A stretch of 20,869 nt of DNA from sequence record NC_005830.1. One strand, 5' to 3'. Below the pieces are notes generated by a model that worked only from the letters and a program-made list of their open reading frames with translations, was not told the origin of the DNA and made no database searches. Every line of letters begins with the position of its first letter. Within the stretch, counting starts at the first letter, position 1. A program made the translations under genes and the position numbers. Below are positions 11,054 through 18,718 of this stretch, piece by piece.

Positions 11054-11995
11054 TTGACCAGCATGTTGGAGATATATTCTGGTTGTAGGGCATGCAGTTA
11101 TGACTATTTATCAGTACTATATGAACAGTACTTCAGAAAGAATGGAATAGAGGCAAAATATGTAGGGACTTTAGTCAGACCAACAGATTCTCAGAAATTC
11201 TTGATAGATGATATTCTTCACGGTTCGCATGAACTAATGAGACAAAGAAAGAAAGTAGACTTTTTCAGAGGTGACAGTGTGCTTTACCCGTGGTATGACT
11301 TTCATATAGACAGTATACTCATAGTTCCGAGTAACTGGAATGCTGAACAGTATAGCAAATATTTTAGAAAAACATATGTTCTGCCTCACTTTGTTAATGA
11401 TGACGCAGTAGAAATGATAGTAAGAAATGAAGAGAGACTGAAAGAAGATAAACTCAGAAATATACAGTATAGTTTTCTAACAATCGGGCATAACAATGAT
11501 TTTGACAGAAAGGGTATAGTTCTGGCAAAAAGACTTATGGACAGACTGGGTATATCTAATAAACTAGTCTGTTATAGTAATGAGCCATTCTGTCATAAGG
11601 AACATAGGCTGACAGAAGTAGGTAAATATAGAGAATATTACAGAGCTAAGTTTTATGTTAGTCTGTCTTATTCAGAAAGTTTCGGTATGACTCCATTTGA
11701 GGCAATGGCAGTAGGTACACCAGTAATCTACCCTAACTGCCATGCTTATGCTGAGTATTTCAAAGGTGAAGTTGGTCTGCCGATAAACTGCCAAGGACAC
11801 AGCATAATGAGAATCGGAGACAAAGACTATAACGTCTGGTACTTTGATATTGATGAAGCAAAAGAGATTATACAGTATGCAGACTCGATGTCAGATGAAG
11901 AGTATATAGATATGTCAATAAAGACGTTTGAGTTCGCAAAACAGTTTTATGCAAGGAACATCATACCGAAGCTGATAGAGATAATGAAAAGTTAG
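11054..11995 (+). CDS. GT-B (GT4-like) glycosyltransferase, 313 aa
   Basis: E-x7-E motif ESFGMTPFEAMAVGTPVI. Confidence 0.9.
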   Translation: MTSMLEIYSGCRACSYDYLSVLYEQYFRKNGIEAKYVGTLVRPTDSQKFLIDDILHGSHELMRQRKKVDFFRGDSVLYPWYDFHIDSILIVPSNWNAEQYSKYFRKTYVLPHFVNDDAVEMIVRNEERLKEDKLRNIQYSFLTIGHNNDFDRKGIVLAKRLMDRLGISNKLVCYSNEPFCHKEHRLTEVGKYREYYRAKFYVSLSYSESFGMTPFEAMAVGTPVIYPNCHAYAEYFKGEVGLPINCQGHSIMRIGDKDYNVWYFDIDEAKEIIQYADSMSDEEYIDMSIKTFEFAKQFYARNIIPKLIEIMKS

Positions 11996-12740: not shown

Positions 12741-15164
12741 ATGTCAGCCCAACAGCAGTGTGACCTAACGTCATATGATGCAATGTATTACTTACAAACA
12801 GGAGATTTACAGTTAGCAGTAAACTTATTTATTTCACCGAATTCATCGTTTAGCTATTCTGGAAACAGTGGTCAGAGTATCCTACAGAGCCTAGGAACAA
12901 TAATAATATGGGTATACAAAGTAAACGGACAGATACACATTTACACTATAGGATGGCAACCGATATACTATTCATTACAGAATGGATGCAGAGCTAATAT
13001 CTATTTCAGACTGTGGGCATTAATCCAGATTCAAGGTGCATGGTTAGCGTCTGAAATAATGAACATGCCAGTAACACTGAAAAATACAGGAGGTCAGTTT
13101 GTAGGTACATTTATACCTCTTCATTTGCTGGGGTTTGCAATAGCTGACTTTCCTTCACTTTCAAGTGGTTCTCAAGGTTACACCCACATGTTAATGTCGC
13201 AGACTGATGGGTCAATAAAGTTACTTCCATCAGCACCTGGCGTATTGCCTTACTTCATAACGGTGGGCTTTCAGTGTAGGGCAGGAGCTTATGTATTGAA
13301 ACAACCATGTCCTAATTGTATTTTTGTCAGACTCTGTGTGCCTACGAGTAATGGTATACCATATGAAGTGCTTATGCTTATATGTTTATTAATATATGCT
13401 GGTTGTTATGCAAGTTACTCTGACATACTCGGAAAGAATGGGCTTTCAACAGTAGGTGCAGGGGTTAATGCCAAGGTTCCAGTTACTGCAATAGTCTACT
13501 TTGATACTCAGCAATATATCCAGCAAAATGTAGTTAGCCAGCTAAACGTTACAATACAGTTATATGCATTAATTTGGGTAGGGATATCAACCACGAATTT
13601 TGTAATACTACCAGAAATAAGCCAAATTCTAAAGATGCCATCTGGGCTAATACTAAATATTCCAGTTCCCTTTCAAGCATATCCGACTCCAACAGTAGCA
13701 ATACCCAGAATACTGACTCTCATAACATGCTGTGGCACACCATACATTTACAACCAATATTTCCCCTGCTCATTTGACAAAGCTTCTACAGTAACAACAG
13801 AGTGCGGGGTTCCTCTAGTGGCATATCCTACAATATCGCAGATGCAACCGATAGCTGGGTCTAATGTAGCATTCCTACTGTCAAACCAGAGTGCAGACTT
13901 TGCTGACTTATTGTCTCTAAATTACGGTCTGCTTAACTTAACGACACAGCAGAAGGTAAGCCTAGCTAACCAGTATTCTTACACCATGACTCAGTGTAAA
14001 AAGGAAGTAATAAGGGGTACATATTACGAGGAATGTGTAAAGAATGTCAGCAGTAATCTTAATCAATATAGTTCACAACCAGCATCGCCACAGCCAAATA
14101 TACCAGTAGATGAAATATTAATTGGAGTAGGGGCAGTTGCACTGATTGTAATAGGAACAGTAGCATTAGTCTTGACTGGTGGTGCCTCTGCACCAGTTAG
14201 TGCTGGTCTTGATGTAGCAGGTGCAGAAGCTCTCGGGTCACTGCTTTTAGACAATGGTGCTTTGTCTTTGTCATCATTGCAAGAAGAAGGTCTAGCTAAT
14301 ACACTTATGCAAACAAGTGTTAGCGATAGTTTTGAAAGTGAGGATGAAGAGATAGTCCAAAATGAGCCTAACTCTGCGAAGCTTGTTGTATTTACCAACA
14401 CCAATCAGCCCTTTACGCTAACAGTAACAGGGACTGACATAACAGGAACTGTAACAATACAAAGCGGTATTGCGGACTTTGACTTAACAATAACATTGCC
14501 ATCAGGAGTTAGTGTACCTATTTCGGTGCCAGCAGGGGTAATAGATGACTTCACAGATGACCAGGGGTACACTATATATGAGCAAGAAGACCAACCAGTT
14601 AGACTGAAATACTCTGATGGTCAAGTAATATATAATACAATTAGTCAGCTAGGCAAGAAACTAGACGGGTTCTTTTCTCTACTGAAAAAACTGTTGAAAT
14701 ACATAGCCGTGGCACTCCTGTCTGCAATCGCCTCAATTCTAGTGAACATGTTCTTGTTTATGCCACTTGTTGCCAGCATAATGACATCAATAATACAGTC
14801 TGGACAAGGAGTAAGTAGTGGTGGTACGGTGACTGTTACAGGGCAATCAACCAGCACGACATTAAGTACTGCATTAAGTGATATAGCTTCCACATTCGGT
14901 CAGATACCGCAAATACTGGAAGAAATACCAGTGGCATTAGCGTCGGCATACCTAATAACTGACCTATTGACAGACTTCTTCGGTGATTTATGGAGAGGAT
15001 TCAGTAAGAACTTGCTACCAAATAAGGCAGTGAATGTAAATATACCGCAACCATTAGAGGTAGACCTGAAATCAAGACTGAAAGCATACTCAGAGGCTGT
15101 AATATCCAAAAATGATAAAGGAGAGTGGGTCATTAACAAGAAACTGAGAGGGAGATTCAGCTAA
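12741..15164 (+). CDS. ORF807, large Cys-containing membrane or structural protein
   Basis: Two long hydrophobic segments (ILIGVGAVALIVIGTVALVL and YIAVALLSAIASILVNMFLFMPLV); beta-rich composition. Confidence 0.9.
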   Translation: MSAQQQCDLTSYDAMYYLQTGDLQLAVNLFISPNSSFSYSGNSGQSILQSLGTIIIWVYKVNGQIHIYTIGWQPIYYSLQNGCRANIYFRLWALIQIQGAWLASEIMNMPVTLKNTGGQFVGTFIPLHLLGFAIADFPSLSSGSQGYTHMLMSQTDGSIKLLPSAPGVLPYFITVGFQCRAGAYVLKQPCPNCIFVRLCVPTSNGIPYEVLMLICLLIYAGCYASYSDILGKNGLSTVGAGVNAKVPVTAIVYFDTQQYIQQNVVSQLNVTIQLYALIWVGISTTNFVILPEISQILKMPSGLILNIPVPFQAYPTPTVAIPRILTLITCCGTPYIYNQYFPCSFDKASTVTTECGVPLVAYPTISQMQPIAGSNVAFLLSNQSADFADLLSLNYGLLNLTTQQKVSLANQYSYTMTQCKKEVIRGTYYEECVKNVSSNLNQYSSQPASPQPNIPVDEILIGVGAVALIVIGTVALVLTGGASAPVSAGLDVAGAEALGSLLLDNGALSLSSLQEEGLANTLMQTSVSDSFESEDEEIVQNEPNSAKLVVFTNTNQPFTLTVTGTDITGTVTIQSGIADFDLTITLPSGVSVPISVPAGVIDDFTDDQGYTIYEQEDQPVRLKYSDGQVIYNTISQLGKKLDGFFSLLKKLLKYIAVALLSAIASILVNMFLFMPLVASIMTSIIQSGQGVSSGGTVTVTGQSTSTTLSTALSDIASTFGQIPQILEEIPVALASAYLITDLLTDFFGDLWRGFSKNLLPNKAVNVNIPQPLEVDLKSRLKAYSEAVISKNDKGEWVINKKLRGRFS

Positions 15165-15331
15165 TGCCACTAGACACATGGAAAAGTTGTTGCCCCCAAG
15201 CTGTAATGTATCAGTCAGGAGACGTTTATGTCATATCTGGATGCGGTGTAGAAGTGAAGTATAAAGACCTAAAGTTAGCAACAAGAGAATTCTGCAAAAA
15301 AGTAGCACTTAAAAGAGTGAGAAAGAAGTGA
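15164..15331 (+). CDS. 55-aa basic protein with four Cys
   Basis: TAATG-coupled to ORF807; MPLDTWKSCCPQAVMYQSGDVYVISGCGVEVKYKDLKLATREFCKKVALKRVRKK. Not in the ORF track. Confidence 0.8.
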   Translation: MPLDTWKSCCPQAVMYQSGDVYVISGCGVEVKYKDLKLATREFCKKVALKRVRKK

Positions 15332-16251
15332 CAAGAAGATACAGAAGTAATCCTGCAGTTATACCAGTACCGTTTCCTGTGCCTCTGCCTATCACAGAAC
15401 AAACCACACCACAAATACCGCCACCATCTCCTACTGCAATACAGTTTACATGTTTCGGTATACCGATTTATCAATCTCCATCTGTCCCTAAATCATATGC
15501 AGTGGTTAATGTGGTGTCACATAACGTTTTTTACGGTTGTAGCGGTGATACATGTTTTGAAGGAGTAGAAGGAGTTGATATAAGGAGTTTCGTATTTCTG
15601 CCAATAAACCTTTTCGCGTATATATTTGCATGCGAAGCACCTTTAGAAACACAAGAGACACAAGGGACACAGACAATCATAGTTATTACAGAAAGCAAAC
15701 CGTTATATAATACTGACAAAGTGACACAAGTAAACCAGATAGTTCAAGGTCAGTTTACAGACAAGTCAGAAGTCTTGTCAATAAATTACGGAGACGTGAA
15801 CGTAACAGACATAAATTATCTATCCTTTATTCAAACAGGGCTACAAATTGCAACAAAATTTACGTTACCGCTATGTGACAGAATATCGATATTTAAGACA
15901 CCATTTGAACTAGCAGTAGCCAAGACGCTTTATCTAGAGATAGTGGGTAAGGAAAGACCAGAATTGACTGCAATACTTGATTTTATGCAGTCTCTAGATG
16001 CAGAAATAAGTGGTATAATAGAAACAGACTACCAGGAAATAGAACCAAATGGCAAGCTAACAGACGTCATAAGTAAGCCAATTCAGAACCAGTTGCCATT
16101 ACAAATTCTACCTGGATTAATACTTGGAGAATCATATCAATTTAACACAAACAACATACTGATGCAAACAGAAATAGAGACAGAGATAGGAGAACAACTA
16201 TATACAGATGGCATAACATTTGAAACAGAACTAACAGTAAAACAATCATAA
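15328..16251 (+). CDS. ORF307, hypothetical protein (Pro-rich N-terminus; probably structural)
   Basis: GTGA-coupled; PAVIPVPFPVPLP...PQIPPPSP. Confidence 0.88.
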   Translation: MTRRYRSNPAVIPVPFPVPLPITEQTTPQIPPPSPTAIQFTCFGIPIYQSPSVPKSYAVVNVVSHNVFYGCSGDTCFEGVEGVDIRSFVFLPINLFAYIFACEAPLETQETQGTQTIIVITESKPLYNTDKVTQVNQIVQGQFTDKSEVLSINYGDVNVTDINYLSFIQTGLQIATKFTLPLCDRISIFKTPFELAVAKTLYLEIVGKERPELTAILDFMQSLDAEISGIIETDYQEIEPNGKLTDVISKPIQNQLPLQILPGLILGESYQFNTNNILMQTEIETEIGEQLYTDGITFETELTVKQS

Positions 16252-16284
16252 CATTTTAATAACCCAGTCAGCATAAATTTAAGT

Positions 16285-17109
16285 ATGCCATTAAACCTGA
16301 AGTATTTCGTACCAGAACAGAGGTACATTATCCTAAAAACTAAAGGTGGCGGTCTAGTATCAACAGACAGAGAAGACTTAGAAATGAGAGTAAGGGATGT
16401 GCTAATCAAGTATCTAGGGAAAAACGTATACGACTCTGACCCAAGAGCCAGGCAAATAATAGACACATTATCTAGAAACTACAGAGACGTAGAAAGCTGG
16501 ATAAGGGATTCAGAATTTGTAATGAGGTCAAGGGCTATACTGAAGTACTATCCTCACGGAGACCCATATGAAGAGGTTAAGGTCATTAAGACACATAATG
16601 AGGCTACATGTTTTCCGATTGCAACATTAGCTTACTTTATAGTAACAGCTAATTGCCCTACAGGTTGTTGTGGCTGTGGTTGTCATGCAGGCTGTAACGG
16701 TTCTGTGGGTCATGCTCCATATTTAATGGTAGGTTCTGATACATCAACATTAACATACTGTTTAATGCCCAACTTAGCACAAGGGTATACCCAATCACCA
16801 TCTGCAACATCGTATTATTGGGCTACTGGAGTCCTAGGTTCAAGTCCAGGAAGTGGCGGTCAAGTCTACGCTGTAGTAACATCAACATGGAACGCTGGAG
16901 TCTTACCTAGCGGGACAATAGGTGAAGTAGGAGCGTTTCAGTTCATGATAAACCAGCTTGCTAATAGCGTAGATTACGGGACAGGAGTACCGAATCAAGG
17001 CTATGTGATGTATGCAAGGGTATCATCTGCAAGTGGTGCATTCTCCCCAATAAGCTATACCAATACTGCACCGTTCACTGCAAGCATAACACTTTATATG
17101 GCTGTATGA
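16285..17109 (+). CDS. ORF274, probable structural protein with a Cys cluster and a tail-collar/baseplate-like C-terminal domain
   Basis: CPTGCCGCGCHAGC; GTIGEVGAF...MYARV...FSPI-x-x-T...TASITL. Confidence 0.75.
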   Translation: MPLNLKYFVPEQRYIILKTKGGGLVSTDREDLEMRVRDVLIKYLGKNVYDSDPRARQIIDTLSRNYRDVESWIRDSEFVMRSRAILKYYPHGDPYEEVKVIKTHNEATCFPIATLAYFIVTANCPTGCCGCGCHAGCNGSVGHAPYLMVGSDTSTLTYCLMPNLAQGYTQSPSATSYYWATGVLGSSPGSGGQVYAVVTSTWNAGVLPSGTIGEVGAFQFMINQLANSVDYGTGVPNQGYVMYARVSSASGAFSPISYTNTAPFTASITLYMAV

Positions 17110-17635: not shown

Positions 17636-17816
17636 TACATACGCATATATAGCCCAGCCCTACTTCTTTACACGTGCATTAGTAAACACAGCTTACGCAA
17701 ATGTAAGTACAAGAGTAATAGCATCACCTACTGAACTAATCATTTTGGAGAATACAGAAGGAGCAGAAGCACAGCCCGCAATGATTTTTAATGCCGTTTT
17801 AGAATATCATACTTAA
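17601..17816 (+). other. 71-codon open frame lacking a canonical start codon, with its stop coupled to ORF300
   Basis: AIRLSPVLTIGNTYAYIAQPYFFTRALVNTAYANVSTRVIASPTELIILENTEGAEAQPAMIFNAVLEYHT*; TAATG overlap at 17814-17818. Confidence 0.4.
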
Positions 17817-18718
17817 TGACCCAAATTCTGGTTAAAAACGCGTTTAGTTGGGTAAATATAGCAGAGGATGTATGTAAGTTCATTCCAAACTGTAAGCTGA
17901 CAGTTATAGACAAAGAAGCAATACCATCAGTTGAGGACACTAACGTTATATACATAGGTGACCTGATGAATGTAAAGACTATCAGTATGTTAGAAAGGAT
18001 AAAAGCAAAAAACGTGGTGTTGTGGGTAGATGAAACAAGAGTACCGAAGACAAGCTACAGTCTAAAGAACCTCAAGTACAATTATTGGATAGTACCAGTT
18101 TCACAGTGGAATAAGGAAGTATATGAAGAACATATAGGTCACACAGAAGAGATAATCCCTAGATGTACAGAATTTAGGAGAACAGAGGGAAAAAGACGCG
18201 GAAATGTGCTGTTTGGTGTAGTATCATTTACACCAGGAGTATACAAGAGATACGAAGAACTGTTACTTGCAGTAGACTATTACAGAAAAAATTACGGTGA
18301 ACTAGAGATATATGCATACGGACATACGGAAGGTCTACCTAGTTTTCCTGGTGTACATAATATGGGCAGATTAGGTAAGTCAGAAATACAGAAGCTATAC
18401 AGTATTGCAGATTTTGCTATAGAATTAGGCATAGAGGCATTTGGAATGCCATCAATAGAAGCATGGGCAATGCAAGTACCTATGCTTTACGGTAACGTAA
18501 ACGACGTGAGAAACCATGCATATGGTGTGTCTATAGACCCAGTAGACTTTGATGCTATAGATTTCGGTGAATATATACTACCAGTACCGATTTATGATGA
18601 ATATAAACTAGCAGAGAAAATAAGAGAAGTAGCAGAAATAGAAGAAGTGCCAGAACTACCAGAGAAATACAGATGCTCATATACAGCAAAAAAGCTCATA
18701 TCTTACCTAGAAGCCTAG
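17816..18718 (+). CDS. GT-B (GT4-like) glycosyltransferase, 300 aa
   Basis: E-x7-E motif EAFGMPSIEAWAMQVPML. Confidence 0.88.
   Translation: MTQILVKNAFSWVNIAEDVCKFIPNCKLTVIDKEAIPSVEDTNVIYIGDLMNVKTISMLERIKAKNVVLWVDETRVPKTSYSLKNLKYNYWIVPVSQWNKEVYEEHIGHTEEIIPRCTEFRRTEGKRRGNVLFGVVSFTPGVYKRYEELLLAVDYYRKNYGELEIYAYGHTEGLPSFPGVHNMGRLGKSEIQKLYSIADFAIELGIEAFGMPSIEAWAMQVPMLYGNVNDVRNHAYGVSIDPVDFDAIDFGEYILPVPIYDEYKLAEKIREVAEIEEVPELPEKYRCSYTAKKLISYLEA

Follow-up and report, generated by a model that had tools for sequence, protein, structure and literature searches.

The window considered here, a whole stretch of 20,869 bp, is the complete genome of Acidianus filamentous virus 1 (AFV1; Captovirus AFV1, Ungulaviridae, Adnaviria) and is 100% identical to AJ567472, as established by tblastn and from the record. 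One of its hypothetical proteins, ORF274 (ORF, open reading frame), carries at its C-terminus a domain (residues ~96–274) that, judged by sequence, almost certainly belongs to a protein family that has no name. Members of this family also occur in (pro)viruses that encode a terminase, a portal, an HK97-type head and a neck. Consequently, the sharing of a module between head–tail viruses and a filamentous virus, proposed in a first-pass annotation of this DNA, holds at the level of sequence. The domain is probably kin to the superfamily of tail-fibre anchors, as indicated by its fold and by transitive sequence links. Since 2003, micrographs have shown AFV1 to bear claw-like ends that clamp onto host pili, and ORF274 is the first concrete candidate for a part of these pilus-gripping claws.

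The ORF274 domain and its family

The motifs originally quoted for the C-terminal domain of ORF274 (YLMVGSDTS, GTIGEVGAF, MYARV and FSPISYTNTAPFTASITL) all lie within residues 146–274 of the translation. They are not products of chance, as they correspond to invariant or near-invariant columns both in the 13 AFV1-like homologues and in a 118-sequence alignment of the family. The boundaries first assigned to the domain, residues 146–274, contain every one of these motifs, but the conserved unit begins earlier, at approximately residue 96–98 (window position ~16570). Distant homologues align with ORF274 from residue 100 or 113 in phmmer comparisons. The motif set of the family, complete in ORF274, comprises VG-S/T-D-T-S/T, T-W-N-A-G, G-x-x-G-E-x-G and R-x-S/A-x-A/G-D/S-G-x-F. 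Columns that are invariant or conserved in at least 90% of sequences include the G of VGSD, the W of TWNAG, the E of GEVG, the R of YAR, and the G and F of SGAF.

Searches of large databases yielded 12 metagenomic homologues of ORF274 at 75–86% identity and two at 39–42%. In a phmmer search of 1.84 billion representatives, four proteins from outside the AFV1 group, 175–214 aa long, matched the C-terminal part alone (E 1.2e-5 to 5.3e-4), with matches beginning at residues 100–146. Residues 1–95, conserved across the 13 AFV1-like homologues, found no match beyond the AFV1-like clade in the same search. Searching with a profile built from the domain brought up 223 proteins at E <0.01, most of them 180–230 aa and a few ~350 aa in length. 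Because this profile already included distant members, a separate comparison of the clade with the rest was performed, in which the AFV1-like profile (14 sequences) matched that of the remaining 104 sequences over 163 columns with an hhalign probability of 99.8% and an E-value of 1.5e-28. ORF274 is the sole member of the family encoded in the AFV1 genome and forms a singleton PHROG, the profile of which is matched by 85 of the 118 family members; the family also overlaps phrog_37005 and phrog_5417.

No Pfam hits were obtained on ORF274 homologues or on family members among those listed, an NCBIfam search returned nothing usable, and a PDB sequence search with the single ORF274 sequence gave no match. 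The only PDB match of the family profile, to antibody heavy chains, was rejected as spurious, resulting from a chance similarity of the type ‘...TVTWNSG...’. When ORF274 and two further queries, P0018 and P0021, were compared by tblastn with 50,697 phage records, AFV1 alone was recovered. The few family members that bear a taxonomic name come from Thermoplasmatota and Bathyarchaeota assemblies, and a literature search found no paper discussing AFV1 ORF274.

A quick tree computed by maximum likelihood recovers the AFV1-like clade as monophyletic (support of 99 in the Shimodaira–Hasegawa-like approximate likelihood ratio test), as sister (94) to a group from contigs L027 and L032, and as nested among members from tailed-virus contexts. 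No direction of transfer is drawn from this tree, because its branches are long and its root is arbitrary.

The tailed-virus contexts are the following. One member (P0022, 358 aa) and its tandem paralogue lie within an integrated element that also encodes an integrase, the small and large terminase, and a portal. The pair is adjoined by two PKD-domain proteins and by a 698-aa protein matching the ‘tail fiber assembly’ and ‘minor tail protein’ PHROGs (E 6.9e-13). These provirus paralogues of ~350 aa, like ORF274, carry the domain at their C-terminus. For a further member (P0040), the contig also encodes a Neck1 protein and a major head protein of HK97 type. In a related element, L009, a 128-aa gene located three genes upstream has a weak hit to PF12571, the Phage_tail_fib family. 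From family membership and these contexts, it follows that a domain of a filamentous adnavirus also occurs, at the sequence level, in head–tail viruses. In an archaeal assembly, such an integrated head–tail element (6758–12177 in L002/L003 and 8108–13087 in L009) has the 128-aa protein, the PKD-domain proteins and two ~350-aa paralogues one after another.

Fold and relation to tail-fibre anchors

An AlphaFold2 model of residues 96–274, built from the 118-sequence alignment, has a mean predicted local distance difference test (pLDDT) of 84.8 and a predicted template modelling score of 0.81, and consists of one helix (residues 15–25 of the model) and eight strands. A full-length AlphaFold model of ORF274 with 13 close homologues reached a pLDDT of only 39 and was discarded. 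The least confident part of the model of residues 96–274 is a Cys-rich loop (pLDDT 52–67). In six close homologues (P0010–P0015; others differ) this loop is reduced to a few residues and lacks the Cys cluster, and it is therefore not needed for the fold. In composition, the C-terminal domain is acidic (pI 4.05), rich in Ser, Gly, Thr and Ala, and very poor in charged residues, while the N-terminal domain is basic (pI 9.2) with many charged residues.

A structural or profile search for tail proteins had been set beforehand as the test that could refute the proposed resemblance to tail-collar and baseplate proteins. It returned matches of moderate score in a uniform list, and the resemblance is upheld. 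Foldseek against the PDB gave no match below E 1e-3; its top rows were A511 gp105, the phi812 arm segment and baseplate, phiKZ baseplate proteins and the tail of Haloferax tailed virus 1 (HFTV1). Every one of the top 12 PDB rows is a part of a tail, baseplate or neck; carbohydrate-binding modules are absent from them. In BFVD, approximately 20 proteins were matched with Foldseek probabilities of 0.9–1.0; they are annotated as tail-collar fibre, tail fibre or baseplate wedge. In the ESM Atlas, clusters in which 33–73% of members carry PF12571 align over 129–130 residues with a template modelling score (TM) of 0.57 and a root-mean-square deviation (rmsd) of 3.3 Å. Other clusters correspond to PF23140 (Gp80; TM 0.56) and PF25691 (BW3TFN; TM 0.48), and a cluster of 219-aa proteins, of which the few classified members are Taleaviricota, reaches TM 0.61. 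The nearest clusters are labelled ‘Viruses 80-88%, commonest Uroviricota’. The support of BFVD and the ESM Atlas for the PF12571 fold is moderate, because the models on both sides are predicted. Weaker BFVD matches were also recorded to proteins of filamentous and coil-shaped viruses, namely Sulfolobales Beppu filamentous virus 2 (283 aa), a gp54-like protein of Sulfolobus islandicus filamentous virus (SIFV) 2 (343 aa), ORF289 of AFV2 and a protein of Aeropyrum coil-shaped virus (303 aa), as well as to the haloarchaeal tailed viruses HHTV-1 and HGTV-1.

As modelled, the fold is shared with modules by which tailed viruses hold their fibres or receptor-binding proteins at the tip of the tail: the PF12571 domains of P2 gpH-type fibres and GP4 gp80 and, more tentatively, A511 gp105, the phi812 arm segment and T4 gp8. 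A511 gp105, the phi812 arm segment (gp118) and T4 gp8 (baseplate wedge 3, PF25691 BW3TFN) are similar in size to the free-standing family members and align with the ORF274 domain at 12–16% identity, an rmsd of 4–5 Å and TM 0.43–0.48. In phi812, the C-terminal strands of the arm segment pair with a scaffold protein (PMC13433997). The fibre–tail adaptor gp80 of the podophage GP4 (PF23140) is shorter, at 136 aa, and no sequence match to it was seen. The HFTV1 tail chain 9h4p_BD, in which the matching region is one domain of a large multidomain protein of 953 aa, shows 8% identity; the hub of this virus anchors three fibres (PMC12494034). The baseplates to which gp105, the arm segment and gp8 belong are those of contractile tails, whereas AFV1 has neither tail nor baseplate.

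Among the closest known relatives in fold is PF12571 (Phage_tail_fib, phage tail-collar fibre protein, N-terminal domain; formerly compared as DUF3751, which is the same family). Both share the layout of an N-terminal helix followed by a beta-sandwich, and their motifs are collinear (the i-T-x-aG helix, VG-D/S-G/T and G-x-x-x-E-x-G-L/A). In P2 gpH, annotated as a probable tail fibre, the N-terminal 155 residues contain PF12571. For profile comparison, PF12571 was represented by an 11-sequence alignment of gpH-type fibre N-termini from phage records of Escherichia, Klebsiella, Ralstonia, Xanthomonas, Mannheimia, Pseudomonas, Clostridioides, Campylobacter and Vibrio. A search with the P2 gpH N-terminus as a profile source had given only near-identical E. 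coli proteins, too uniform for use. The original description of the domain as DUF3751-like stands for the fold and for a transitive sequence link; it does not extend to a direct profile match, which is not significant. A single-sequence comparison with PF12571 was likewise not significant. A greedy hhalign alignment of the family with PF12571 is collinear, pairs the motifs as the first-pass annotation did and sets the ORF274 helix against the PF12571 N-terminal helix, but does not constitute statistical support.

The transitive link is provided by two bridges. The first is ORF164 of AFV9, initially found as a BFVD structural match to the ORF274 domain (E 2.4e-3, TM 0.52). This free-standing protein of 164 aa lacks the N-terminal domain of AFV1 type and the Cys loop, and carries a ‘NIMTNAGLNEIA’ helix and a ‘VGSGTGTP’ strand that are fibre-like. 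Against the family profile it scores 34.2 in hhalign (E 8e-5), compared with a mean of 11.9 and a maximum of 16.4 in 60 shuffles; against the PF12571 alignment it scores 26.4, compared with a mean of 12.6 and a maximum of 22.0 in 80 shuffles. The second bridge is phrog_5417, which draws matches from 46 of the 118 family members (1.3e-10 at best), from the 128-aa protein of the provirus (4.8e-9), which itself matches the tail-collar-fibre phrog_1780 at 0.005, and from the fibre N-terminus of Vibrio phage phi 2 (0.0039). By means of these bridges, the ORF274 domain is placed in the PF12571 superfamily, outside that Pfam family.

Copies of ORF164 at 85% identity are present in AFV3, AFV6 and AFV8. 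Among filamentous viruses, the domain module is thus not confined to AFV1 and extends to betalipothrixviruses. Plain searches did not reveal this distribution: tblastn did not find AFV9 ORF164, and the family hidden Markov model (HMM) gave no match in the genomes of AFV9, AFV2, SIFV, AFV3 and the Sulfolobus islandicus rod-shaped virus SIRV2, a result that hhalign identifies as a false negative for AFV9 and AFV3. ORF164 itself had no match in AFV2, SIFV or SIRV2.

Gene neighbourhood in AFV1 and its relatives

The coordinates of ORF274, its parts and its neighbours are collected in Table 1. ORF274 is the last gene of the co-directional block ORF807–ORF55–ORF307–ORF274, all four genes of which are labelled hypothetical in the AFV1 record. 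The three upstream genes belong to no recognisable family, and ORF307 had no usable match in the ESM Atlas; ORF807, ORF55 and ORF307 may be partners of ORF274 in a terminal structure. Despite the overlaps among the three genes before it, ORF274 could have a promoter of its own giving a leaderless mRNA, with which the A/T-rich box preceding it would be consistent. The C-terminal half of ORF807 (12741–15164) contains, in translation, two long hydrophobic stretches rich in Gly and Ala.

Table 1. Features of the ORF274 region and associated glycosyltransferase genes in the AFV1 genome
Feature	Position	Strand	Remarks
ORF313, GT4-type glycosyltransferase	11054-11995		related glycosyltransferases in L025, L027, L032, AFV9
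ORF807, ORF55, ORF307	12741..16251	+	co-directional upstream genes, overlapping stop/start codons
Spacer before ORF274, 33 nt	16252..16284	+	A/T-rich box ~22-30 nt 5' of ATG, read from sequence
ORF274 coding sequence	16285..17109	+	274 aa, 29.8 kDa, 0 predicted transmembrane segments
ORF274 N-terminal domain, residues 1-95	16285..16569	+	predicted mainly helical
Start of family domain, residues 96-121	16570..16647	+	short strand and alpha-helix 109-121; homologue alignments, model
Cys-rich loop of variable length, residues 122-145	16648..16719	+	homologue alignment, model
Beta-sandwich core, residues 146-274	16720..17106	+	eight strands, pLDDT mostly >90; all quoted motifs
ORF300, glycosyltransferase	17816..18718	+	phrog_4356, E 1.7e-68

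In AFV1, the genes follow one another as ORF807, ORF55, ORF307, ORF274, ORF52, ORF80 and the glycosyltransferase ORF300, and the order upstream of ORF274 is kept in the close relative L026. In the more distant contig L025, a 453-aa gene and a 182-aa gene precede an ORF274 homologue (36–42% identity), which is followed by a 60-aa gene, a glycosyltransferase and an ORF426-like ATPase. Among the upstream genes of L025, just an ORF307-like N-terminus is recognisable, the large proteins having diverged beyond recognition. AFV9 shows the order ORF1170 (on the opposite strand), ORF293, ORF164, ORF64b and a glycosyltransferase; ORF1170 had no match in SIRV2, SIFV, AFV2 or AFV1. An order of large protein, protein of ~200–300 aa, family member, small ORF and glycosyltransferase is therefore shared by AFV1, L026, L025 and AFV9. 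In L027 and L032, a large protein is followed by two family members and a glycosyltransferase.

The contigs L027, L028 and L032, from an unclassified type of archaeal virus, carry the closest relatives from outside the AFV1 group: two family members located after a 519–573-aa protein and followed by glycosyltransferases. A third family paralogue (200 aa) lies upstream on L027, with a 198-aa candidate counterpart on L032. The 519–573-aa protein has weak tape-measure-like PHROG matches, and its 573-aa version on L027 is the positional equivalent of ORF807. Two tandem proteins of ~175 aa on the L027/L032 contigs, considered as candidate filament coat proteins, had no detectable relatives. In the parts seen of L027 (an ERZ27248160 contig), L028 and L032, no head–tail hallmark gene is visible.

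A GT4-type glycosyltransferase is encoded downstream of the family member in AFV1, L025, L027, L032 and AFV9. The neighbouring glycosyltransferases of the relatives show homology to ORF313 of AFV1 (E 1e-14 to 1e-24) and, at a weaker level, to ORF300. L025, a 13.3-kb ERZ27246762 contig, contains ORF146-, ORF313-, ORF274-, ORF300- and ORF426-like genes at 23–36% identity, which suggests that Ungulaviridae-like viruses may include unsampled diversity.

ORF274 and the claws of AFV1

The claws of AFV1 attach to host pili and close on them (PMC4456609, PMC7911016, PMC10791045). The claws are held responsible for pilus attachment in these reviews, of 2015, 2021 and 2024, none of which names a protein for them. 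On balance, ORF274 is somewhat favoured as a two-domain, low-copy structural part of the AFV1 virion terminus, either claw or collar, a function deduced from a fold and a kinship that were themselves found. Its gene context makes it a plausible candidate for the claw hub. In such an arrangement, the basic AFV1-specific N-terminal domain would tie ORF274 to the end of the nucleoprotein filament or to the envelope, and the acidic, Ser/Thr/Gly-rich C-terminal domain would act as an exposed assembly or attachment module that oligomerises or pairs with the products of neighbouring genes (ORF807, ORF307). ORF274 may also be modified by the glycosyltransferase encoded next to it.

Several observations weigh against placing ORF274 among tail-fibre anchors or in the virion. 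The family profile scores 16.3 against the PF12571 alignment in hhalign, within the column-shuffle null (12.2 ± 1.5, maximum 16.8), and HMM-to-sequence scores between the two are near 0 (≤5 bits, hmmsearch). The architecture also differs: in ORF274 the domain sits at the C-terminus and runs up to the stop codon with no fibre shaft after it, whereas PF12571 is N-terminal and is followed by a long fibre, as in gpH-type proteins. No proteomic or imaging data placing ORF274 in the virion were found. Of the AFV9 genes, eight are labelled ‘viral structural protein’ in the record, a set that includes neither ORF164 nor its neighbours ORF293 and ORF1170. A prediction of residues 96–274 in three copies reached 0.15 and 0.08, where the mark is 0.42, and speaks neither for nor against a trimer.

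Instead of serving as adaptor or hub, the C-terminal domain might itself be the receptor-binding tip in contact with the pilus. Its exposed appearance, acidity and scarcity of charged residues would suit such a role, as would the hypervariable, indel-rich Cys loop, of a kind often found on host-recognition surfaces. Tandem paralogues of the family also occur within one genome, a pattern typical of adhesins that diversify, and in proviruses family members are adjoined by adhesin-like PKD-domain genes. However, apart from the loop, the beta-sandwich ranks with the best-conserved regions of ORF274 (75–86% identity across AFV1-like viruses), and the proteins that have changed beyond recognition in AFV1 relatives are the larger upstream ones. 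The closest solved structures with a known role, A511 gp105 and the phi812 arm segment, are attachment or scaffold modules and do not bind receptors. A receptor tip is considered unlikely.

It is also conceivable that the likeness of fold reflects convergence on a beta-sandwich with no evolutionary link, ORF274 being, for example, a glycan-binding or glycosylated envelope protein that works with glycosyltransferases. The failure of the direct profile comparison with PF12571, the middling Z and TM scores, the absence of Pfam hits from all family members listed, and the recurrence of the GT4 linkage in five virus lineages would all be compatible with this explanation. It is nevertheless quite unlikely in view of the make-up of the PDB list (tail, baseplate or neck parts in 12 of 12 top rows, none of them carbohydrate-binding), the collinear helix, VG-x-G/D and G-x-x-x-E-x-G motifs, the scores of AFV9 ORF164, which exceed every shuffle against both profiles, and the tail-fibre-like genes and the protein with a weak PF12571 hit that adjoin members in tailed proviruses. 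Very unlikely is a non-virion protein that acts within the infected cell or at its surface (for instance in superinfection exclusion, egress or the acquisition of an envelope) and uses the fold as an assembly scaffold: virion evidence for ORF274 and a structural annotation of AFV9 ORF164 are indeed lacking, and the basic N-terminal domain could bind nucleic acid or membranes within the cell, but the gene lies in the sole long co-directional block together with the largest AFV1 protein, the product has no enzyme-like features, all structural relatives found are virion parts, and few-copy terminal proteins could plausibly escape gel-based identification.

The fold and its task in tailed phages are already known. 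What is new is the presence of the fold in Adnaviria, in C-terminal position and without a fibre, together with an unnamed family that links two realms and a conserved gene neighbourhood. It is tentatively possible that one ancient tail-fibre-anchor module underlies the host-recognition organelles of both of these unrelated realms, namely tails in Duplodnaviria and, in Adnaviria (AFV1-like viruses and betalipothrixviruses), terminal claws or filaments, and that in filamentous viruses it is always accompanied by a large fast-evolving protein and a glycosyltransferase. If this is true, the AFV1 claw would be built on ORF274 as its connector, and genes of the adsorption apparatus would be flagged by the family in archaeal viruses at large. 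A gene with an attachment fold offers a direct handle on the claws, through antibodies, pull-downs and fitting in cryo-electron tomography. The capsids of Adnaviria and Duplodnaviria are unrelated, and a family shared at the sequence level in their putative adsorption machinery shows that such modules cross realms in archaeal viruses. With more than 220 members and neither a name nor a Pfam entry, the family could be used to annotate host-recognition gene clusters in archaeal viromes.
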